From the IMG/VR virus record IMGVR_UViG_3300036766_000988, positions 188,184 to 252,183 of that record: DNA of 64,000 nt, one strand, 5' to 3'. Position numbers and translations under genes: made by a program. The stretch's first letter is position 1. Each line of letters starts with the position of its first letter. The notes under the pieces are model-generated. The model saw nothing but the letters and a program-made list of their open reading frames with translations, had not been told where the DNA came from and did no database searches. Shown in pieces: positions 1-40,316 of this stretch.

Positions 1-1036
1 GACTAGGAATACCGCCAGCGAGATTCAAGACATCGCAGATGAGGCTCACTTTGGTCGCATATCGAGTTCGCAGGAAGTATTCCGCGAGCTTGATGCACCC
101 GACACCGTAGCGTTCCCAAAGTTGCTGTCCGAGAGCCCGGTCGACGTAGACGAACTCCGCGAACATGCCGTTGGCGAGTCGAAAGCTGTTCATGGCAGCT
201 TCGGCCAACCCCGCCGACACTTCCTCGGCACTCACCCGCTCGATAGCCTGTTCAATGAGGCTAATGGCTCGCTTGGAATCCCCCAGTGCGAGTAGGATTT
301 CGTAGTAGGTCGCCACGACATTGAGGTGCAGGTACTCCCGCACGCTCTTGAGGGTGACGTCTCCTGCTTGCGCGATCATCTCCAGCCGGTTGACCACATC
401 ACGCACGTGGCCGCCCGAGTAGTCGATGACCGTCAAGACAGCATCGTCTTCGTGGTAGACTTCCTCGGCGTTGAGGATCTTCTTCATCCGCACCAGCACG
501 TCTTCTCGTGTGATCTTGCGGATTGCGTATTCCTCGCACCTGGAACGAATCGGGCCTCGGATCTTCTCCGGCTCTGTCGTACAGAAGATCCCCACCATCT
601 TCTTGTCTTCGAGGGGCTTGAGCAAGACGTCTTGCGCGTCTTTGGACATCCTGTGCGCTTCGTCGAAGACGTAGACTCGCTTCGGTGCGTTGAAGACCGC
701 GAAAGGTAGGTCGTCCACGATGGCGCGAACGTGCTCTATGGTCCCTCGGCTAGCGGCGTCCTGTTCGACGTACGCTCCGGAGGTCTCGGCAAGGACGTCG
801 CGACAGTTCTCACACTCGTTGCAAGGTTCGGGGTTGGCCTTGTTGAGATTCATGCAGAGCATCGCTCGTGCAAGGATCCTGGCAAGGGTTGTCTTCCCTT
901 GCCCATGCCCACCTGAGAACACGTAGTTCGTGTCCAAAGCGGTATCCTTCGCGAGACGTGCCTTGAGTAGAAGGACGGCGCCCTCCTGCCCAAGCACGTC
1001 TCCGAAGGTCATAGGCCTATATTTGGTGTCCCACAC
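1..1036 (-). CDS. dnaX: DNA polymerase III gamma/tau clamp-loader subunit (partial, runs off left edge)
   Basis: Absent from the ORF track (no stop in window). Manual translation from GTG 1036 (GGAGG upstream): MWDTKYRPMTFGDVLGQ, Walker A GGHGQGKTT, Zn module C..PCNECENC, DAAS, Walker B FDEAH, IRSRC. Confidence 0.92.
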   Translation of the reverse strand, partial: MWDTKYRPMTFGDVLGQEGAVLLLKARLAKDTALDTNYVFSGGHGQGKTTLARILARAMLCMNLNKANPEPCNECENCRDVLAETSGAYVEQDAASRGTIEHVRAIVDDLPFAVFNAPKRVYVFDEAHRMSKDAQDVLLKPLEDKKMVGIFCTTEPEKIRGPIRSRCEEYAIRKITREDVLVRMKKILNAEEVYHEDDAVLTVIDYSGGHVRDVVNRLEMIAQAGDVTLKSVREYLHLNVVATYYEILLALGDSKRAISLIEQAIERVSAEEVSAGLAEAAMNSFRLANGMFAEFVYVDRALGQQLWERYGVGCIKLAEYFLRTRYATKVSLICDVLNLAGGIPS

Positions 1037-1038
1037 GA

Positions 1039-1452
1039 TTAGGCCTCCGAGCGCCGCTGCTTTATTTCGTAGAAAGTACGTGCATCGTCCGTGTCTTTCC
1101 ACTCTTGGTCAGGGATGCACCGGATCCAGGAGCTGAAGAACTCTCCGGCTTCTACGAGGAGCTTGTCTCCCGCGCACTCGATTTCGACCAGACCGGGATA
1201 GCCACGGATGTTCTCGTTGACGGAGCTGAATCCGCCTCTTTCCCGAGCTGCCAAGATCTCCGTCACATAAGACACGGTGCCCGGTTGACAGAACTTGATG
1301 ATCCGTGGGTGCTTGGAGGCCTCCACGTTCTCTTGTTCGGTAGGCGGCCGGACCCGAACCCACAGGTTTCCCTTCTTCATCGACGAGCGTCGAGAATTGT
1401 GGGCCTGTACGAACTTGCGGACATCCTCCGCAAAAGCGTGTTCAGGAGGCAC
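1039..1452 (-). CDS. hypothetical protein
   Basis: Tightly packed in the minus-strand operon. Confidence 0.65.
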   Translation of the reverse strand: MPPEHAFAEDVRKFVQAHNSRRSSMKKGNLWVRVRPPTEQENVEASKHPRIIKFCQPGTVSYVTEILAARERGGFSSVNENIRGYPGLVEIECAGDKLLVEAGEFFSSWIRCIPDQEWKDTDDARTFYEIKQRRSEA

Positions 1453-22383: not shown

Positions 22384-23342
22384 CAGGACACCACGAAGGA
22401 CTGGGCGAGAAGAGCTTTGACGTGGAACGTCAAGAAGAGCTTGGTCGAACGGGACTGCTCACGAAGTCCTCGAACCGCAGCCCCCAGTTGGTGCCACATC
22501 GCGTTGGTGTTTCGTGTGCTCATCTGCGCGATGTCGTCACTCAGATCGAGGTTGATGATGCGGGTAGGGTCGGTAGAGAAGAGGAGCAGATCATGCAAGA
22601 GCTGCGATAGGAAACGAAGGACTTGCGGGAGTTCTTTTTCCACCGAATCGATCGCTGAAAAGAGCCCTGCGAGATCTCTCTCCAAGGAGAGTCGTATTAA
22701 CGAAAACGTCTTGTCCCGGAGCACGAGACGACCCGAACCCCAGTATCGAACAGCACGGCCAACCGAGCCTTCGCTCAACCTTGCATAGACAAGAGCTTTA
22801 GTGTGGTCTGGTTCGAACCGTTGAAGCACTGATAGGACCATTGGCTCCGAAAGTGCGTGGTACGAAACGAGACCACACCGTGATCGAATCGTTGGGATCA
22901 CGCGAGCTTGCGACTCAGCAAGCAGAAAAAACCGTGTTATATGAGGCGGTTCTTCCAGGGTTTTGAGAATCGCGTTAGCTGCCGCACTGGTAAGGCGATC
23001 AGCACCGTCGATCATGAGAATCTTGAACGGAGCTGTCGTCGGGCATGTCGTTGCCGATGGAATGAGCGCACGAATTGCATCGACCCCAATTTCCTTATCG
23101 CCGTCCGGAGAGAGCATAAAGAAATCGGGATGGATTCCCTGATCGAGCTGAACGCAATGAAAGCACGGACACTTGTCCTCGTGCGTACCAGTACAGAACA
23201 TCTCCTTCGTCGCTTGCATGACGGAGAAGCGCCGACCAACGCCTTCTTCCCCTACAAGGAGTAGAGGAGACGAGAAGCGTTGCTCAACCACTCGACGGAG
23301 GAAATGAACTCCCTCCTCTTGTTCACGAACGTCGCTCAGCAT
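22383..23342 (-). CDS. holB: DNA polymerase III delta' subunit
   Basis: GEEGVGR, CPCFHC..HPD, AANAILKTLEEPP, PTIRSRC. Confidence 0.9.
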   Translation of the reverse strand: MLSDVREQEEGVHFLRRVVEQRFSSPLLLVGEEGVGRRFSVMQATKEMFCTGTHEDKCPCFHCVQLDQGIHPDFFMLSPDGDKEIGVDAIRALIPSATTCPTTAPFKILMIDGADRLTSAAANAILKTLEEPPHITRFFLLAESQARVIPTIRSRCGLVSYHALSEPMVLSVLQRFEPDHTKALVYARLSEGSVGRAVRYWGSGRLVLRDKTFSLIRLSLERDLAGLFSAIDSVEKELPQVLRFLSQLLHDLLLFSTDPTRIINLDLSDDIAQMSTRNTNAMWHQLGAAVRGLREQSRSTKLFLTFHVKALLAQSFVVS

Positions 23343-23529
23343 TCTCGCCGCTTCCAAGCTGGGCCGAGCGGCGTAGGGGCTCCACTGGAACGAGCTGCAT
23401 CACCAGATGAAAGTTCTGGCCGCAATTCGAACAGATGAAACGATGGGGCTCCTGTCCACTCGGCGAGAGTTGACTGCGGCACGTGCTACACCGCATGAGC
23501 GATTCAGGAGATGTCGATTCTTCGGGCAT
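23323..23529 (-). CDS. small Zn-ribbon protein
   Basis: CSTC...CSNC. Confidence 0.6.
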   Translation of the reverse strand: MPEESTSPESLMRCSTCRSQLSPSGQEPHRFICSNCGQNFHLVMQLVPVEPLRRSAQLGSGENAERRS

Positions 23530-23741
23530 CAGAGGTCAAAAACGCCGCCAGTTGCGAGCCCCCAGGTTGTGTTGCACTTGGCGCACCGGTAGAGGTGCCG
23601 ACCTTGCGAGTTCGGGGGGGTCATCTCGATTGCGAGAATGCTCTCACACCCAGGCCGCTTGCACTTGATGTGGACGGTCTTGGGCTCCTCGGGAACGGGA
23701 GCAGCAAGACCCGGCTTGGTTCCGGCAGGATCGATCGGCAT
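23529..23741 (-). CDS. small Zn-ribbon protein
   Basis: CKRPGC...CAKC; AGGAG RBS. Confidence 0.65.
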   Translation of the reverse strand: MPIDPAGTKPGLAAPVPEEPKTVHIKCKRPGCESILAIEMTPPNSQGRHLYRCAKCNTTWGLATGGVFDL

Positions 23742-23785
23742 CTACTTCTCCTAGGCTCAGCTTGCAGGGCGCTGAACTGTCCTCG

Positions 23786-24196
23786 TTACAGGTTCGATGT
23801 GGGGTACGAATCGGGGAACAACGCACGCAGTTGCCCGTAGACGCGGGAGAAGAACACCGGATCCCACTGGTCGATCGTAGAAAGATCGGGGTTGATGAGC
23901 GGATTTCCCGTGTTGACGAAGTGCGGGGGCGGGTATTGCCTCGGATCGAACGTCCCATCCTGGATGAAGGGTAGGATTTTCGCGAAATCCGTGGCCAGTA
24001 CTAGACACACGAACCCCTTCGCCTTGAAACGGTAGTAGGCGACTTGCTTCGCGAAAACCCGTTCGGCCTGTACGATCTTGCGTTCGTAGCCGACGATCGC
24101 CGCCGCTACGTCGTGTAGGTCTTCTTGCCGAAGACGGGACAGACGTCGACCGTCAACGAATTGCAGCCGGGCGTCCACGATGAGGAGGCTCGACAA
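23786..24196 (-). CDS. hypothetical protein
   Basis: Fills the gap on the operon strand; TTG start uncertain. Confidence 0.5.
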   Translation of the reverse strand: MSSLLIVDARLQFVDGRRLSRLRQEDLHDVAAAIVGYERKIVQAERVFAKQVAYYRFKAKGFVCLVLATDFAKILPFIQDGTFDPRQYPPPHFVNTGNPLINPDLSTIDQWDPVFFSRVYGQLRALFPDSYPTSNL

Positions 24197-24200
24197 GTAG

Positions 24201-24307
24201 AAAAAACTCAGCCCCTCAAATCGCCCGCCCCGCCCCTTCGGTCCAGCGCTGTTCAGACGCTTAGACCGTCAGTTGAACACAGGAATCGGGCGGTTTGAAG
24301 GGCCGAG
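24201..24307 (-). ncRNA. structured RNA D: 21-bp closing stem, inner hairpin/pseudoknot, U6 tail
   Basis: CTCGGCCCTTCAAACCGCCCG pairs with CGGGCGATTTGAGGGGCTGAG (two G-U, one mismatch on minus strand); inner TGTTCA/TGAACA; TTTTTT at 24201-24206. Confidence 0.55.
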
Positions 24308-24313
24308 AAACTT

Positions 24314-24420
24314 TGGTGGACACGATCGGGGTTGAACCGACAACCAGGGCTTTGGAGGCCCCAGCTCTACCCGTCTTGACAAGCGGCGCCGCCGGTCAAG
24401 ACCTTGAGTCTTACGTGCCC
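24314..24420 (-). tRNA. tRNA-Trp(CCA) with 30-nt hairpin insertion in the D-loop
   Basis: Acceptor GGGCACG/CGTGTCC + A-CCA; anticodon arm GGGGC-CTCCAAA-GCCCT; T-arm GTCGG-TTCAACC-CCGAT; D-arm CTC-AA...GGTA-GAG interrupted by 24373-24402. Confidence 0.85.
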
Positions 24421-24433
24421 GTGAACTGAGAAG

Positions 24434-24611
24434 CTCGTTCGCTCCCGTGGAGGGGCTGGCTACTCTCCAGCGTGTCGCAGGCGTATACGTTCATGACGCG
24501 CATCGTGTCTGCGAGCAAGAGGGTTGATCTCACGGCCGTAAGACCAACACCCTGGCTTTCGGCAGGCCCTCGCGGGCTCACCATCAAGCTGCCCTCCCGG
24601 CAACGAACGAA
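24434..24611 (-). ncRNA. unrecognised multibranch structured RNA B (~178 nt)
   Basis: Closing stem TTCGTTCGTT..GGAGGG / CCCTCC..GAGCGAACGAG; GCCC-GCGA-GGGC; 12-bp GTTGGTCTTACG/CGTGAGATCAAC; TCGCAG/CTGCGA; GCTGG/CCAGC. Confidence 0.6.
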
Positions 24612-24613
24612 CT

Positions 24614-24711
24614 GAACCACAAGCAGGCGTAGATATGACCCACGCACTTCCAGCCTACACGGCGACTCCCTGGCAAGGGGGCGGTCTCCTTGATCCTACT
24701 GCTTGTGGTTC
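24614..24711 (-). ncRNA. unrecognised structured RNA A (~98 nt)
   Basis: Perfect 13-bp terminal stem GAACCACAAGCAG/CTGCTTGTGGTTC starting ~10 nt after the promoter. Confidence 0.55.
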
Positions 24712-24720
24712 GTAGTTTTA

Positions 24721-24745
24721 CTACACCGCTCGACCCCCAAGTTCA
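24721..24745 (-). promoter_or_regulatory. promoter motif upstream of the ncRNA/tRNA cassette
   Basis: TGAAC ttgggggtcgagcggt GTAG. Confidence 0.72.
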
Positions 24746-25048
24746 ACCTTGCTTCGATACCAAGACCGCTTTCTCGTATGAGGAGCCGATCTTCGCGTAC
24801 AGCTCGGCCGGAGAGAACCCTGGCTCAGGGACCTCCCCTCGATGGGACGCTTCGGCCTTTTGGTGGCAGGGGTCACAGAGCGAGATGCCGTTCTCGGCGA
24901 CGTAGCCACCGTTGGGCATCTCAGTCCGATCGGTGATGTGGTGAGCATCAAGCGGTTGAGGAGCTGAGCAAACGCGACAGGCGTTCCGGTCCCTCTTGAA
25001 GACGGCCTCCCTAAACGCCTGTCGCACCTGCTTCTTGGTGTCACCCAC
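24743..25048 (-). CDS. HNH endonuclease
   Basis: VFKRDRNACRVC..DAHHI..NGISLCDPCH; start GTG 25048 chosen by overlap. Confidence 0.85.
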   Translation of the reverse strand: MGDTKKQVRQAFREAVFKRDRNACRVCSAPQPLDAHHITDRTEMPNGGYVAENGISLCDPCHQKAEASHRGEVPEPGFSPAELYAKIGSSYEKAVLVSKQG

Positions 25049-25703
25049 CTTCGATCCTGTTCCGAACGGGCTTTCGGTCCTTCCAGTGCTCGTCCGTTTG
25101 AACGTGATCTTCGCGAACCCACTTGGCCACGTAGTGGGGGAACATGGAGTCGGGCATGTCGCACTGGCGTCGAACCACCACCCCTTCACGAGTTTCGCCA
25201 ACGTGGCTTGCCCCGAGGGCATGCCGCTCGACGAGCTTCTGAAGCTCCTTGTCGCTGTAAACGATCACGTTCCGTTCCAGAACGGGTACCGTGGGACACC
25301 CCACCAGATCGGCCCACTGCTCGACCTCGGCCCAGCTAGCCCACAGGCACTTTCGGAGGTCGCAGACCCCAAAGACCATGAAGTAGGCGGGCAGCCGGTT
25401 GTAGCTGATTGTGTGCTGAGCCCAGAGCCACTCGCCGAAGATCTGCACCCCAGCCGGGATGCGGCTCCTGATGCACGCGTGCATGGCCTTGAGAGCGCTG
25501 AAACTTTGGTGGCGGGGTCGGCCAGCATGGGTGCGGGCGAAGACCGCCTCGTTCTCCAGGCAGACGTTCGAGCCGTCCATCTTCTCGGTCACCATGATGG
25601 GGGAGAAGAGCAGGAAGTCCGTGGACTCGATTCGCTTGTCATCCTTCGTGCAGCCGGGGCTGAACAAGAAATGACCTGTTCGGGGGTACTTGGGGGAGTC
25701 CAT
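25041..25703 (-). CDS. ATP-dependent RNA ligase family protein (Rnl2-like NTase domain)
   Basis: KYPRTGH, motif I TEKMDGSN, FGEW, FMVFG, EGVVVR, AKWVR. Confidence 0.82.
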   Translation of the reverse strand: MDSPKYPRTGHFLFSPGCTKDDKRIESTDFLLFSPIMVTEKMDGSNVCLENEAVFARTHAGRPRHQSFSALKAMHACIRSRIPAGVQIFGEWLWAQHTISYNRLPAYFMVFGVCDLRKCLWASWAEVEQWADLVGCPTVPVLERNVIVYSDKELQKLVERHALGASHVGETREGVVVRRQCDMPDSMFPHYVAKWVREDHVQTDEHWKDRKPVRNRIEGG

Positions 25704-25722
25704 GACATGCCTCGTGCGGCTA

Positions 25723-25747
25723 CTACGCCACGGGTCCCCCAAGTTCA
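25723..25747 (-). promoter_or_regulatory. promoter motif upstream of RNA ligase
   Basis: TGAAC ttgggggacccgtggc GTAG. Confidence 0.72.
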
Positions 25748-25751
25748 GCCC

Positions 25752-27805
<2,054 letters not shown>

Positions 27806-40250: not shown

Positions 40251-40316
40251 CTACGCCCGTCAAGGGACAAATTCAGCCGAAATTTAGATGCTGAACGTCC
40301 GGTTTCCAGGGCGTAG
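40251..40316. promoter_or_regulatory. divergent pair of promoter motifs
   Basis: Minus TGAAT-N16-GTAG (40251-40275); plus TGAAC-N16-GTAG (40292-40316). Confidence 0.72.

Follow-up and report, generated by a model that had tools for sequence, protein, structure and literature searches.

Structured non-coding RNAs that are linked in one transcript to a tRNA or a tRNA-like element are known from several systems, among them MALAT1–mascRNA, the tRNA–miRNA units of MHV68 and bacterial tRNA–sRNA co-transcripts. Giant phages carry large toolkits for translation and RNA repair, and to our knowledge almost no non-coding RNAs have been described in them. Here we analysed a 64,000-nt stretch of DNA (hereafter, the window), which forms the end of an IMG/VR virus record of 252,183 bp. 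The record, 53% complete according to CheckV, represents a giant phage, apparently from a sediment metagenome. The initial annotation of the window had pointed to an unrecognised multibranch RNA of about 178 nt, here called RNA B, at 24434-24611. Our analysis places RNA B as the second of four modules in a predicted non-coding unit of 511 nt that runs from 24713 to 24203 on the minus strand. The minus-strand genes around RNA B encode RtcB (5 kb from RNA B), a NUDIX protein, a tRNA-binding-domain protein, GroEL, an RNA ligase, an HNH endonuclease, two clamp-loader subunits and ribonucleotide reductase. Elsewhere in the genome, outside the window, 54 tRNAs and a canonical tmRNA (tag ANDNSTALPALLAA) lie within G000:C1:36908-88477; one of these tRNAs has the anticodon CTA and is thus a potential amber suppressor.

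On the minus strand, RNA B (24432-24613) is predicted to fold into a five-way junction in which a 21-bp interrupted closing stem carries four helices. The strands of the closing stem (24613-24592 and 24454-24432) pair in blocks of 12, 3 and 6 bp separated by single-base bulges, and helices A (24589-24555), B (24553-24518), C (24517-24473) and D (24471-24455) follow one another around the junction with linkers of 2, 1, 0, 1 and 0 nt. The initial annotation had described a long interrupted closing stem with at least four internal helices and had given no strand; the fold belongs to the minus strand, and in minus-strand letters all of the helices named at that time are present, that is, GCCC-GCGA-GGGC at 24577-24566, an 11-12-bp helix with two G-U pairs at 24548-24523, UCGCAG/CUGCGA with its nested helix at 24514-24475 and GCUGG/CCAGC at 24471-24455. 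The limits first given were slightly too narrow, as the stem reaches 24432 and 24613. The loops of helix C (UCAUGA) and helix B (GGCC) are self-complementary and, in the modelled fold, would permit self-association of RNA B.

Folding of the minus strand from 24434 to 24611 gave a minimum free energy (MFE) of -89.4 kcal/mol (z = -4.98), and none of 200 shuffled sequences was as good; for the version that is 2 nt wider on each side (24432-24613) the MFE was -93.6 kcal/mol (z = -5.8). The structure is an MFE prediction for a region of 60% G+C, and it lies beyond all of 150 random 182-nt windows taken from the same 252-kb genome, among which the best MFE was -85 kcal/mol and the best z -4.86. Base-pair probabilities on the minus strand are mostly above 0.9, with lower values of approximately 0.4-0.6 in the 4-bp basal stem of helix B and the 2-bp basal stem of helix C. 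The plus strand folds much more weakly (MFE -74.2 kcal/mol, z = -2.1), and with a covariance model made from the single sequence (model R1) the minus strand obtains 218.7 bits and the plus strand 39.3 bits. This strand asymmetry arises because nine G-U pairs can form on the minus strand only; they favour that strand by 15-19 kcal/mol and suggest selection at the RNA level. In a distant part of the window, a 367-aa ORF resembling a clamp-loader/DnaX gene contains another very stable region with a long hairpin (841-1060, minus strand; approximately -90 kcal/mol per 180 nt), and this region is unrelated to RNA B.

The 546-nt gap that extends from the stop codon of the HNH gene (24743) to the next gene is structured as a whole (z = -5.5) and contains no ORF with relatives or family matches. 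At its upstream edge, at 24718-24750 (minus strand), we found a phage promoter-like motif, GGTTGAAC-N16-GTAGTAA. In the general form [CT]TGAAC-N16-(C)GTAGTA[GC], this motif has 40 copies in the 252-kb genome compared with 2.0 in shuffled sequences, and further copies within the window lie at 25720-25752, 31106, 39327 and 40280 on the minus strand and at 40287 and 42370 on the plus strand. An ATG is located 4-6 nt downstream of at least 26 of the 40 copies, a sequence arrangement which suggests that a single class of promoter serves many leaderless genes of this phage; no ATG follows the copy at 24750-24718. By analogy with the other copies, transcription is predicted to start at approximately 24713, 2 nt before the first stem. 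A sigma-70 consensus scan misses the motif at 24718-24750.

The 511-nt RNA that would result folds as four abutting and individually closed modules. The first, element 1 (24614-24711, minus strand), was identified as inverted-repeat pair I3 and by folding; it is a 98-nt module with a perfect 13-bp closing stem that adjoins RNA B without a spacer, and its fold taken alone is not significant (z = -1.5). RNA B is followed by a tRNA-like cloverleaf, described below, and the unit closes with a long hairpin (24307-24207) and a run of six U residues (24206-24201), which together occupy 24201-24307 on the minus strand. This end of the unit, recognised in the fold of the 511-nt RNA, resembles an intrinsic terminator and is missed by a simple terminator scan because its stem is long and irregular. 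It is located approximately 25 nt ahead of the likely GTG start (24178) of a conserved gene of a 136-aa family (23786-24196, minus strand), for which we collected nine homologues (alignment A1) and syntenic loci.

The third module is a degenerate tRNA-Trp-like cloverleaf at 24314-24420 (minus strand), delineated with the Rfam tRNA model, the MFE of the cloverleaf and a search for acceptor pairing. Its acceptor stem, GGGCACG/CGUGUCC, comprises 7 bp including G3-U70 and is followed by A73 and an encoded CCA, and GGGCACG is the only segment 5′ of the T arm that pairs with all seven bases of CGUGUCC. G3-U70 and A73 together make up the established identity set for alanine. The cloverleaf has a canonical T arm with the loop UUCAACC, and its anticodon loop, CUCCAAA on a 9-bp stem, contains the tryptophan anticodon CCA. 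The D arm is aberrant, the D region being replaced or interrupted by a long hairpin. The Rfam tRNA model assigns 24 bits to 24317-24376, below its gathering score of 29 bits, and ARAGORN calls a tRNA-Trp at relaxed settings (-ps80) only, not at default. The module does not represent a copy of the tRNA-Trp that the phage itself encodes. The 13-nt sequence GAAACTTTGGTGG occurs in identical form at the CCA end of the module (24307-24319) and at a site inside the RNA ligase gene (25500-25512); this repeat may be due to chance or be a recombination scar. Two further T-arm-like motifs occur outside the window at G000:C1:~95820-95960, behind a copy of the promoter motif and upstream of a gene; ARAGORN calls no tRNA there.

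Upstream of the unit lies the RNA ligase gene (25041-25742, minus strand; PF09414, E = 1.3e-27), which has more than 1000 homologues of approximately 218 aa, together with the HNH endonuclease gene (24743-25048, minus strand), which matches the Pfam HNH and PHROG HNH families and encodes a protein of only about 100 aa. The likely GTG start of the HNH gene overlaps the TGA stop codon of the ligase gene (25041-25048, minus strand). As judged from the sequence, this overlap suggests translational coupling, and a 159-aa ORF call for the HNH gene is probably too long at the N terminus. A 30-nt direct repeat (24719-24748 and 25721-25750, minus strand), whose two copies are 80% identical and exactly 1002 nt apart, brackets this ligase–HNH cassette, and both copies bear the promoter motif. 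The arrangement looks like a promoter duplication produced by insertion of the cassette.

Comparison with related phages revealed that the content of the RNA B locus is variable. In distant relatives a gene of the 136-aa family comes directly after GroEL, which makes the non-coding unit an accessory insertion at this place. In closer relatives GroEL is followed by an RNA ligase gene, and 211-654 nt then separate the ligase gene from the 136-aa-family gene; one locus (L003) has GroEL, a 480-nt gap and the 136-aa-family gene. At the locus of RNA B the relatives have either nothing or a different conserved RNA. This second RNA, which we termed RNA X, is approximately 150 nt long, folds as a row of five hairpins and is common to the gaps of L160 (2290-2452), L161 (2362-2530), L162 and L003 (545-716). 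It emerged from comparison of the gaps: the L160 and L161 versions are 73.5% identical over 200 nt, and compensatory changes are found in six pairs among three sequences. RNA X has no match in Rfam. It is preceded by a promoter similar to that of the unit in the window and ends before an intrinsic terminator. In L003 it is succeeded, after 5 nt, by a tRNA-like element with a terminal ACCA. That element (L003:713-801) is unrelated to the one in the window; it has the acceptor stem CGCAAGC/GCUUGCG and the T loop UUCGACU, and GNRA-type hairpins take the place of its D and anticodon arms.

RNA X and RNA B share no detectable sequence or profile similarity, as model R2, which represents RNA X, found nothing in the window and model R1 found nothing in the RNA X loci. 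Two stretches of similarity between the window and RNA X, of 9 nt and 14 nt, are accordingly attributed to chance or to remnants of promoters, because R2 has no match in the window. The two RNAs resemble each other in their setting, since both occupy the same slot, with GroEL or the RNA ligase gene on one side and the 136-aa-family gene on the other, and both have the same type of promoter and a terminator, but they differ in architecture, RNA X being a row of five hairpins and RNA B a closed junction. Because the relatives hold RNA X at this place, in a promoter-to-terminator arrangement and in L003 with a tRNA-like element, the locus appears to be a recurrent slot for non-coding RNAs. RNA B itself is lineage-specific, and its absence from the relatives implies that it is dispensable for the phage group.

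Searches for further copies recovered a near-identical RNA B region from one freshwater metagenome (Logan, filed twice) in contigs of read length, sequence matches which show that the RNA region is present in a second habitat. Relative to the window, these contigs have two differences over 24410-24560 and one over 24661-24809, and 16 differences in the 82 bases of the HNH gene at 24872-24953. The RNA region and the 3′ end of the HNH gene are therefore about 99% identical whereas the middle of the HNH gene is about 80% identical, which places a mosaic junction between 24809 and 24872. None of the sequencing runs that match the locus is labelled as RNA. By blastn, the gap sequence matched none of 50,697 phage records. 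Model R1 detected only RNA B itself in its own 252-kb record, where it is a single copy, and nothing in 17 related loci, five related megaphage records or 84 loci that had been hit by pattern. The inner-stem pattern CCGGGAGGG-N120-150-CCCTCCACGG had 4 matches in IMG/VR and at least 120 in GTDB genomes, in a scan of one genome per species for 185,579 species, but this pattern is too loose, all of its matches are attributable to chance and none fits R1. Two exact 20-21-mers from helices D and A had 0 matches in IMG/VR, and the neighbouring proteins have no close relatives there. Among the ligase homologues with available DNA, the closest (L026) has a locus that is not syntenic with the window. 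Close homologues of the HNH gene in other phages have further genes tightly on either side and no adjoining RNA, so RNA B is not an HNH-linked element. Since no diverged homologue was found, there is no covariation for RNA B.

Taken together, these data favour the interpretation of RNA B as a genuine structured domain within a non-coding phage RNA that has its own promoter and terminator, undergoes tRNA-type maturation and acts in trans, and we assign a probability of about 0.5 to it. In the model that we propose, the phage promoter at 24750-24718 would initiate a minus-strand transcript of approximately 511 nt, which the long hairpin and U6 tract would end at about 24201. This transcript would contain, in order, element 1, RNA B, the tRNA-Trp-like cloverleaf with its terminal ACCA, and the terminator hairpin. 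The tRNA-maturation enzymes of the host might then act on the cloverleaf, with RNase P cutting on its 5′ side and 3′ trimming halting at the CCA. The maturation would free the upstream part, either element 1 and RNA B or RNA B alone, as a stable RNA whose 3′ end is defined, and this RNA could act in trans as a protein-binding scaffold or a decoy. In this model, RNA B is co-transcribed with a tRNA mimic that probably directs its maturation.

Other explanations of the locus account for part of the same observations. The unit could be a cis-acting leader or attenuator, that is, the 5′ leader of the 136-aa gene, in which read-through of the terminator sets expression and RNA B is the sensor or folding platform. 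The terminator is indeed located directly before the 136-aa gene in the window, L160, L161 and L003, and no promoter motif intervenes between the two. In the window and in L003, however, the structured RNA and the terminator are more than 100 nt apart, with a tRNA-like element between them, unlike the design of an aptamer joined to an expression platform; no riboswitch family matches, and more distant relatives have the 136-aa gene directly behind GroEL and leaderless, so that we regard a leader as possible but unlikely. A selfish or neutral MITE-like insertion between element 1 and the tRNA-like element, with the closing stem as terminal inverted repeats and a fold that serves no function for the phage, would fit the absence of RNA B from all relatives, its exact self-closure, its size of approximately 180 nt, which is typical of such elements, and the occurrence of the 7-nt sequence UCAGUUC as a direct repeat at its two borders (24615-24609 and 24429-24423). 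We consider this origin distinctly unlikely: the UCAGUUC repeats are not cleanly outside the inverted repeats, the sequence is single-copy in the 252-kb record and absent from the five related megaphage records, the inner-stem pattern returned no true copy from IMG/VR or from one genome for each of the 185,579 species, and the nine G-U pairs, with their 15-19 kcal/mol advantage for one strand, suggest selection on an RNA.

If the region were instead a small protein gene, encoded by the 78-aa ORF (24411-24647) or its 57-aa version, the fold would be incidental. The ORF is open, the 57-aa version has been called as a gene on the source contig, and the GC content by codon position (0.63/0.51/0.68) resembles that of real genes and is not clearly non-coding. 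The 78-aa ORF nevertheless has no homologue among 5.8 billion proteins, its sole match being its own 57-aa call on the source contig, and no match to Pfam or PHROG; moreover, no ATG follows the promoter, unlike in most genes of the phage, and a coding region would very rarely contain a 21-bp closing stem with z = -5.8, all of which makes a protein gene improbable. The initial annotation had itself raised two doubts about its RNA, namely that this overlapping ORF might be conserved as a protein and that the fold might be no stronger than shuffled controls, and neither refutes the RNA, because the ORF is without homologues and the folding beats the shuffles. The same annotation considered the complexity of the fold to be typical of ribozymes or RNP scaffolds. 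A catalytic RNA or intron remnant, either a self-cleaving ribozyme or a group I intron reduced to its 3′ core and associated with an HNH homing endonuclease, would be in keeping with the multi-helical fold and with the HNH gene immediately upstream, but we found no evidence for a ribozyme and neither an Intron_gpI nor a ribozyme model matched at E values up to 10 across 23300-26000. Furthermore, no gene is split, GroEL and the 136-aa gene being complete, close HNH homologues in other phages lack flanking RNA, and the HNH gene is part of the ligase–HNH cassette bracketed by promoter repeats; we therefore judge this origin highly improbable.

Returning to RNA B as a domain of a phage non-coding RNA, a more far-reaching proposal is that RNA B, with or without element 1, founds a new class of ornate phage RNAs, as a molecule that associates with itself or scaffolds proteins, or as a ribozyme, joined to a tRNA-like tail that would accept alanine (G3-U70, A73, CCA) and taking part in a phage programme of RNA repair and take-over of translation. 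Such a programme is suggested by the neighbouring genes for RNA ligase, RtcB, tRNA-binding protein, NUDIX protein and GroEL and by the 54 tRNAs and tmRNA elsewhere in the genome; we offer the proposal as a tentative and rather unlikely extension. At present, RNA B, a singleton so far from one lineage, makes a good candidate for a phage RNA family not described before. If expressed, it would be a tractable case of how a phage builds and matures a structured RNA by means of tRNA-type processing signals, and RNA B and RNA X would be two additions to the short list of phage RNAs that have no assigned function.

We compared RNA B with known RNA classes. A search of the whole window with Rfam 15 at the gathering threshold gave no match for RNA B, and at E values up to 10 the intervals 24100-24800 and 23300-26000 yielded only the weak tRNA match outside RNA B and two noise matches. 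There was no gathering-level match to raiA, ROOL, GOLLD, lysine or other riboswitches, group I introns or self-cleaving ribozymes. The initial assessment, which could not match RNA B to tmRNA, RNase P RNA, SRP RNA, 6S RNA or raiA RNA, agrees with the lack of an Rfam 15 match and with ARAGORN, which found no tmRNA. Several protein-associated RNAs were rejected in view of their missing partners. The 252-kb record contains no RVT_1 domain that would accompany a retron msr-msd and no IS110 DEDD domain that would accompany a bridge RNA. For a TnpB or IscB omega RNA, the record offers only a TnpB zinc-ribbon match below the cut-off, about 140 kb away, and the HNH protein of only about 100 aa. A Y RNA or YrlA was likewise rejected, since the TROVE match, at 12.7 bits, does not reach the cut-off and is distant from the locus, and the Rfam models of Y RNA and YrlA gave no match.

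The unit nonetheless resembles several described systems in part. It is tmRNA-like in that a tRNA-like part with G3-U70, A73 and CCA is joined to a large domain closed by a long stem; unlike in tmRNA, the structured domain lies outside the acceptor stem and there is no tag reading frame. A tmRNA was rejected because ARAGORN finds none at default or relaxed settings and both acceptor strands are located 3′ of RNA B. The presence of an RtcB gene 5 kb away and of a tRNA-like module in the unit recalls the Y RNA/YrlA system with Rsr–RtcB, but the record has no Ro60/TROVE gene, and the tRNA-like part of the unit is separate and not inside the terminal stem as in YrlA. Like ROOL and GOLLD, which are encoded by phages or prophages, often near tRNA genes, RNA B has many helices and no ORF; it differs from them in matching no Rfam model and in being shorter, with 182 nt (511 nt for the unit), and its oligomerisation is putative. 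With respect to the tRNA-linked transcripts, the differences are that the present locus is from a bacteriophage, that its CCA is encoded, that the upstream RNA takes the form of a five-way junction in place of a triple helix or a miRNA hairpin, and that its processing is putative. What the unit has in common with these transcripts is a structured RNA directly 5′ of a tRNA-like cloverleaf, an arrangement through which tRNA-processing enzymes could define the 3′ end of that RNA.
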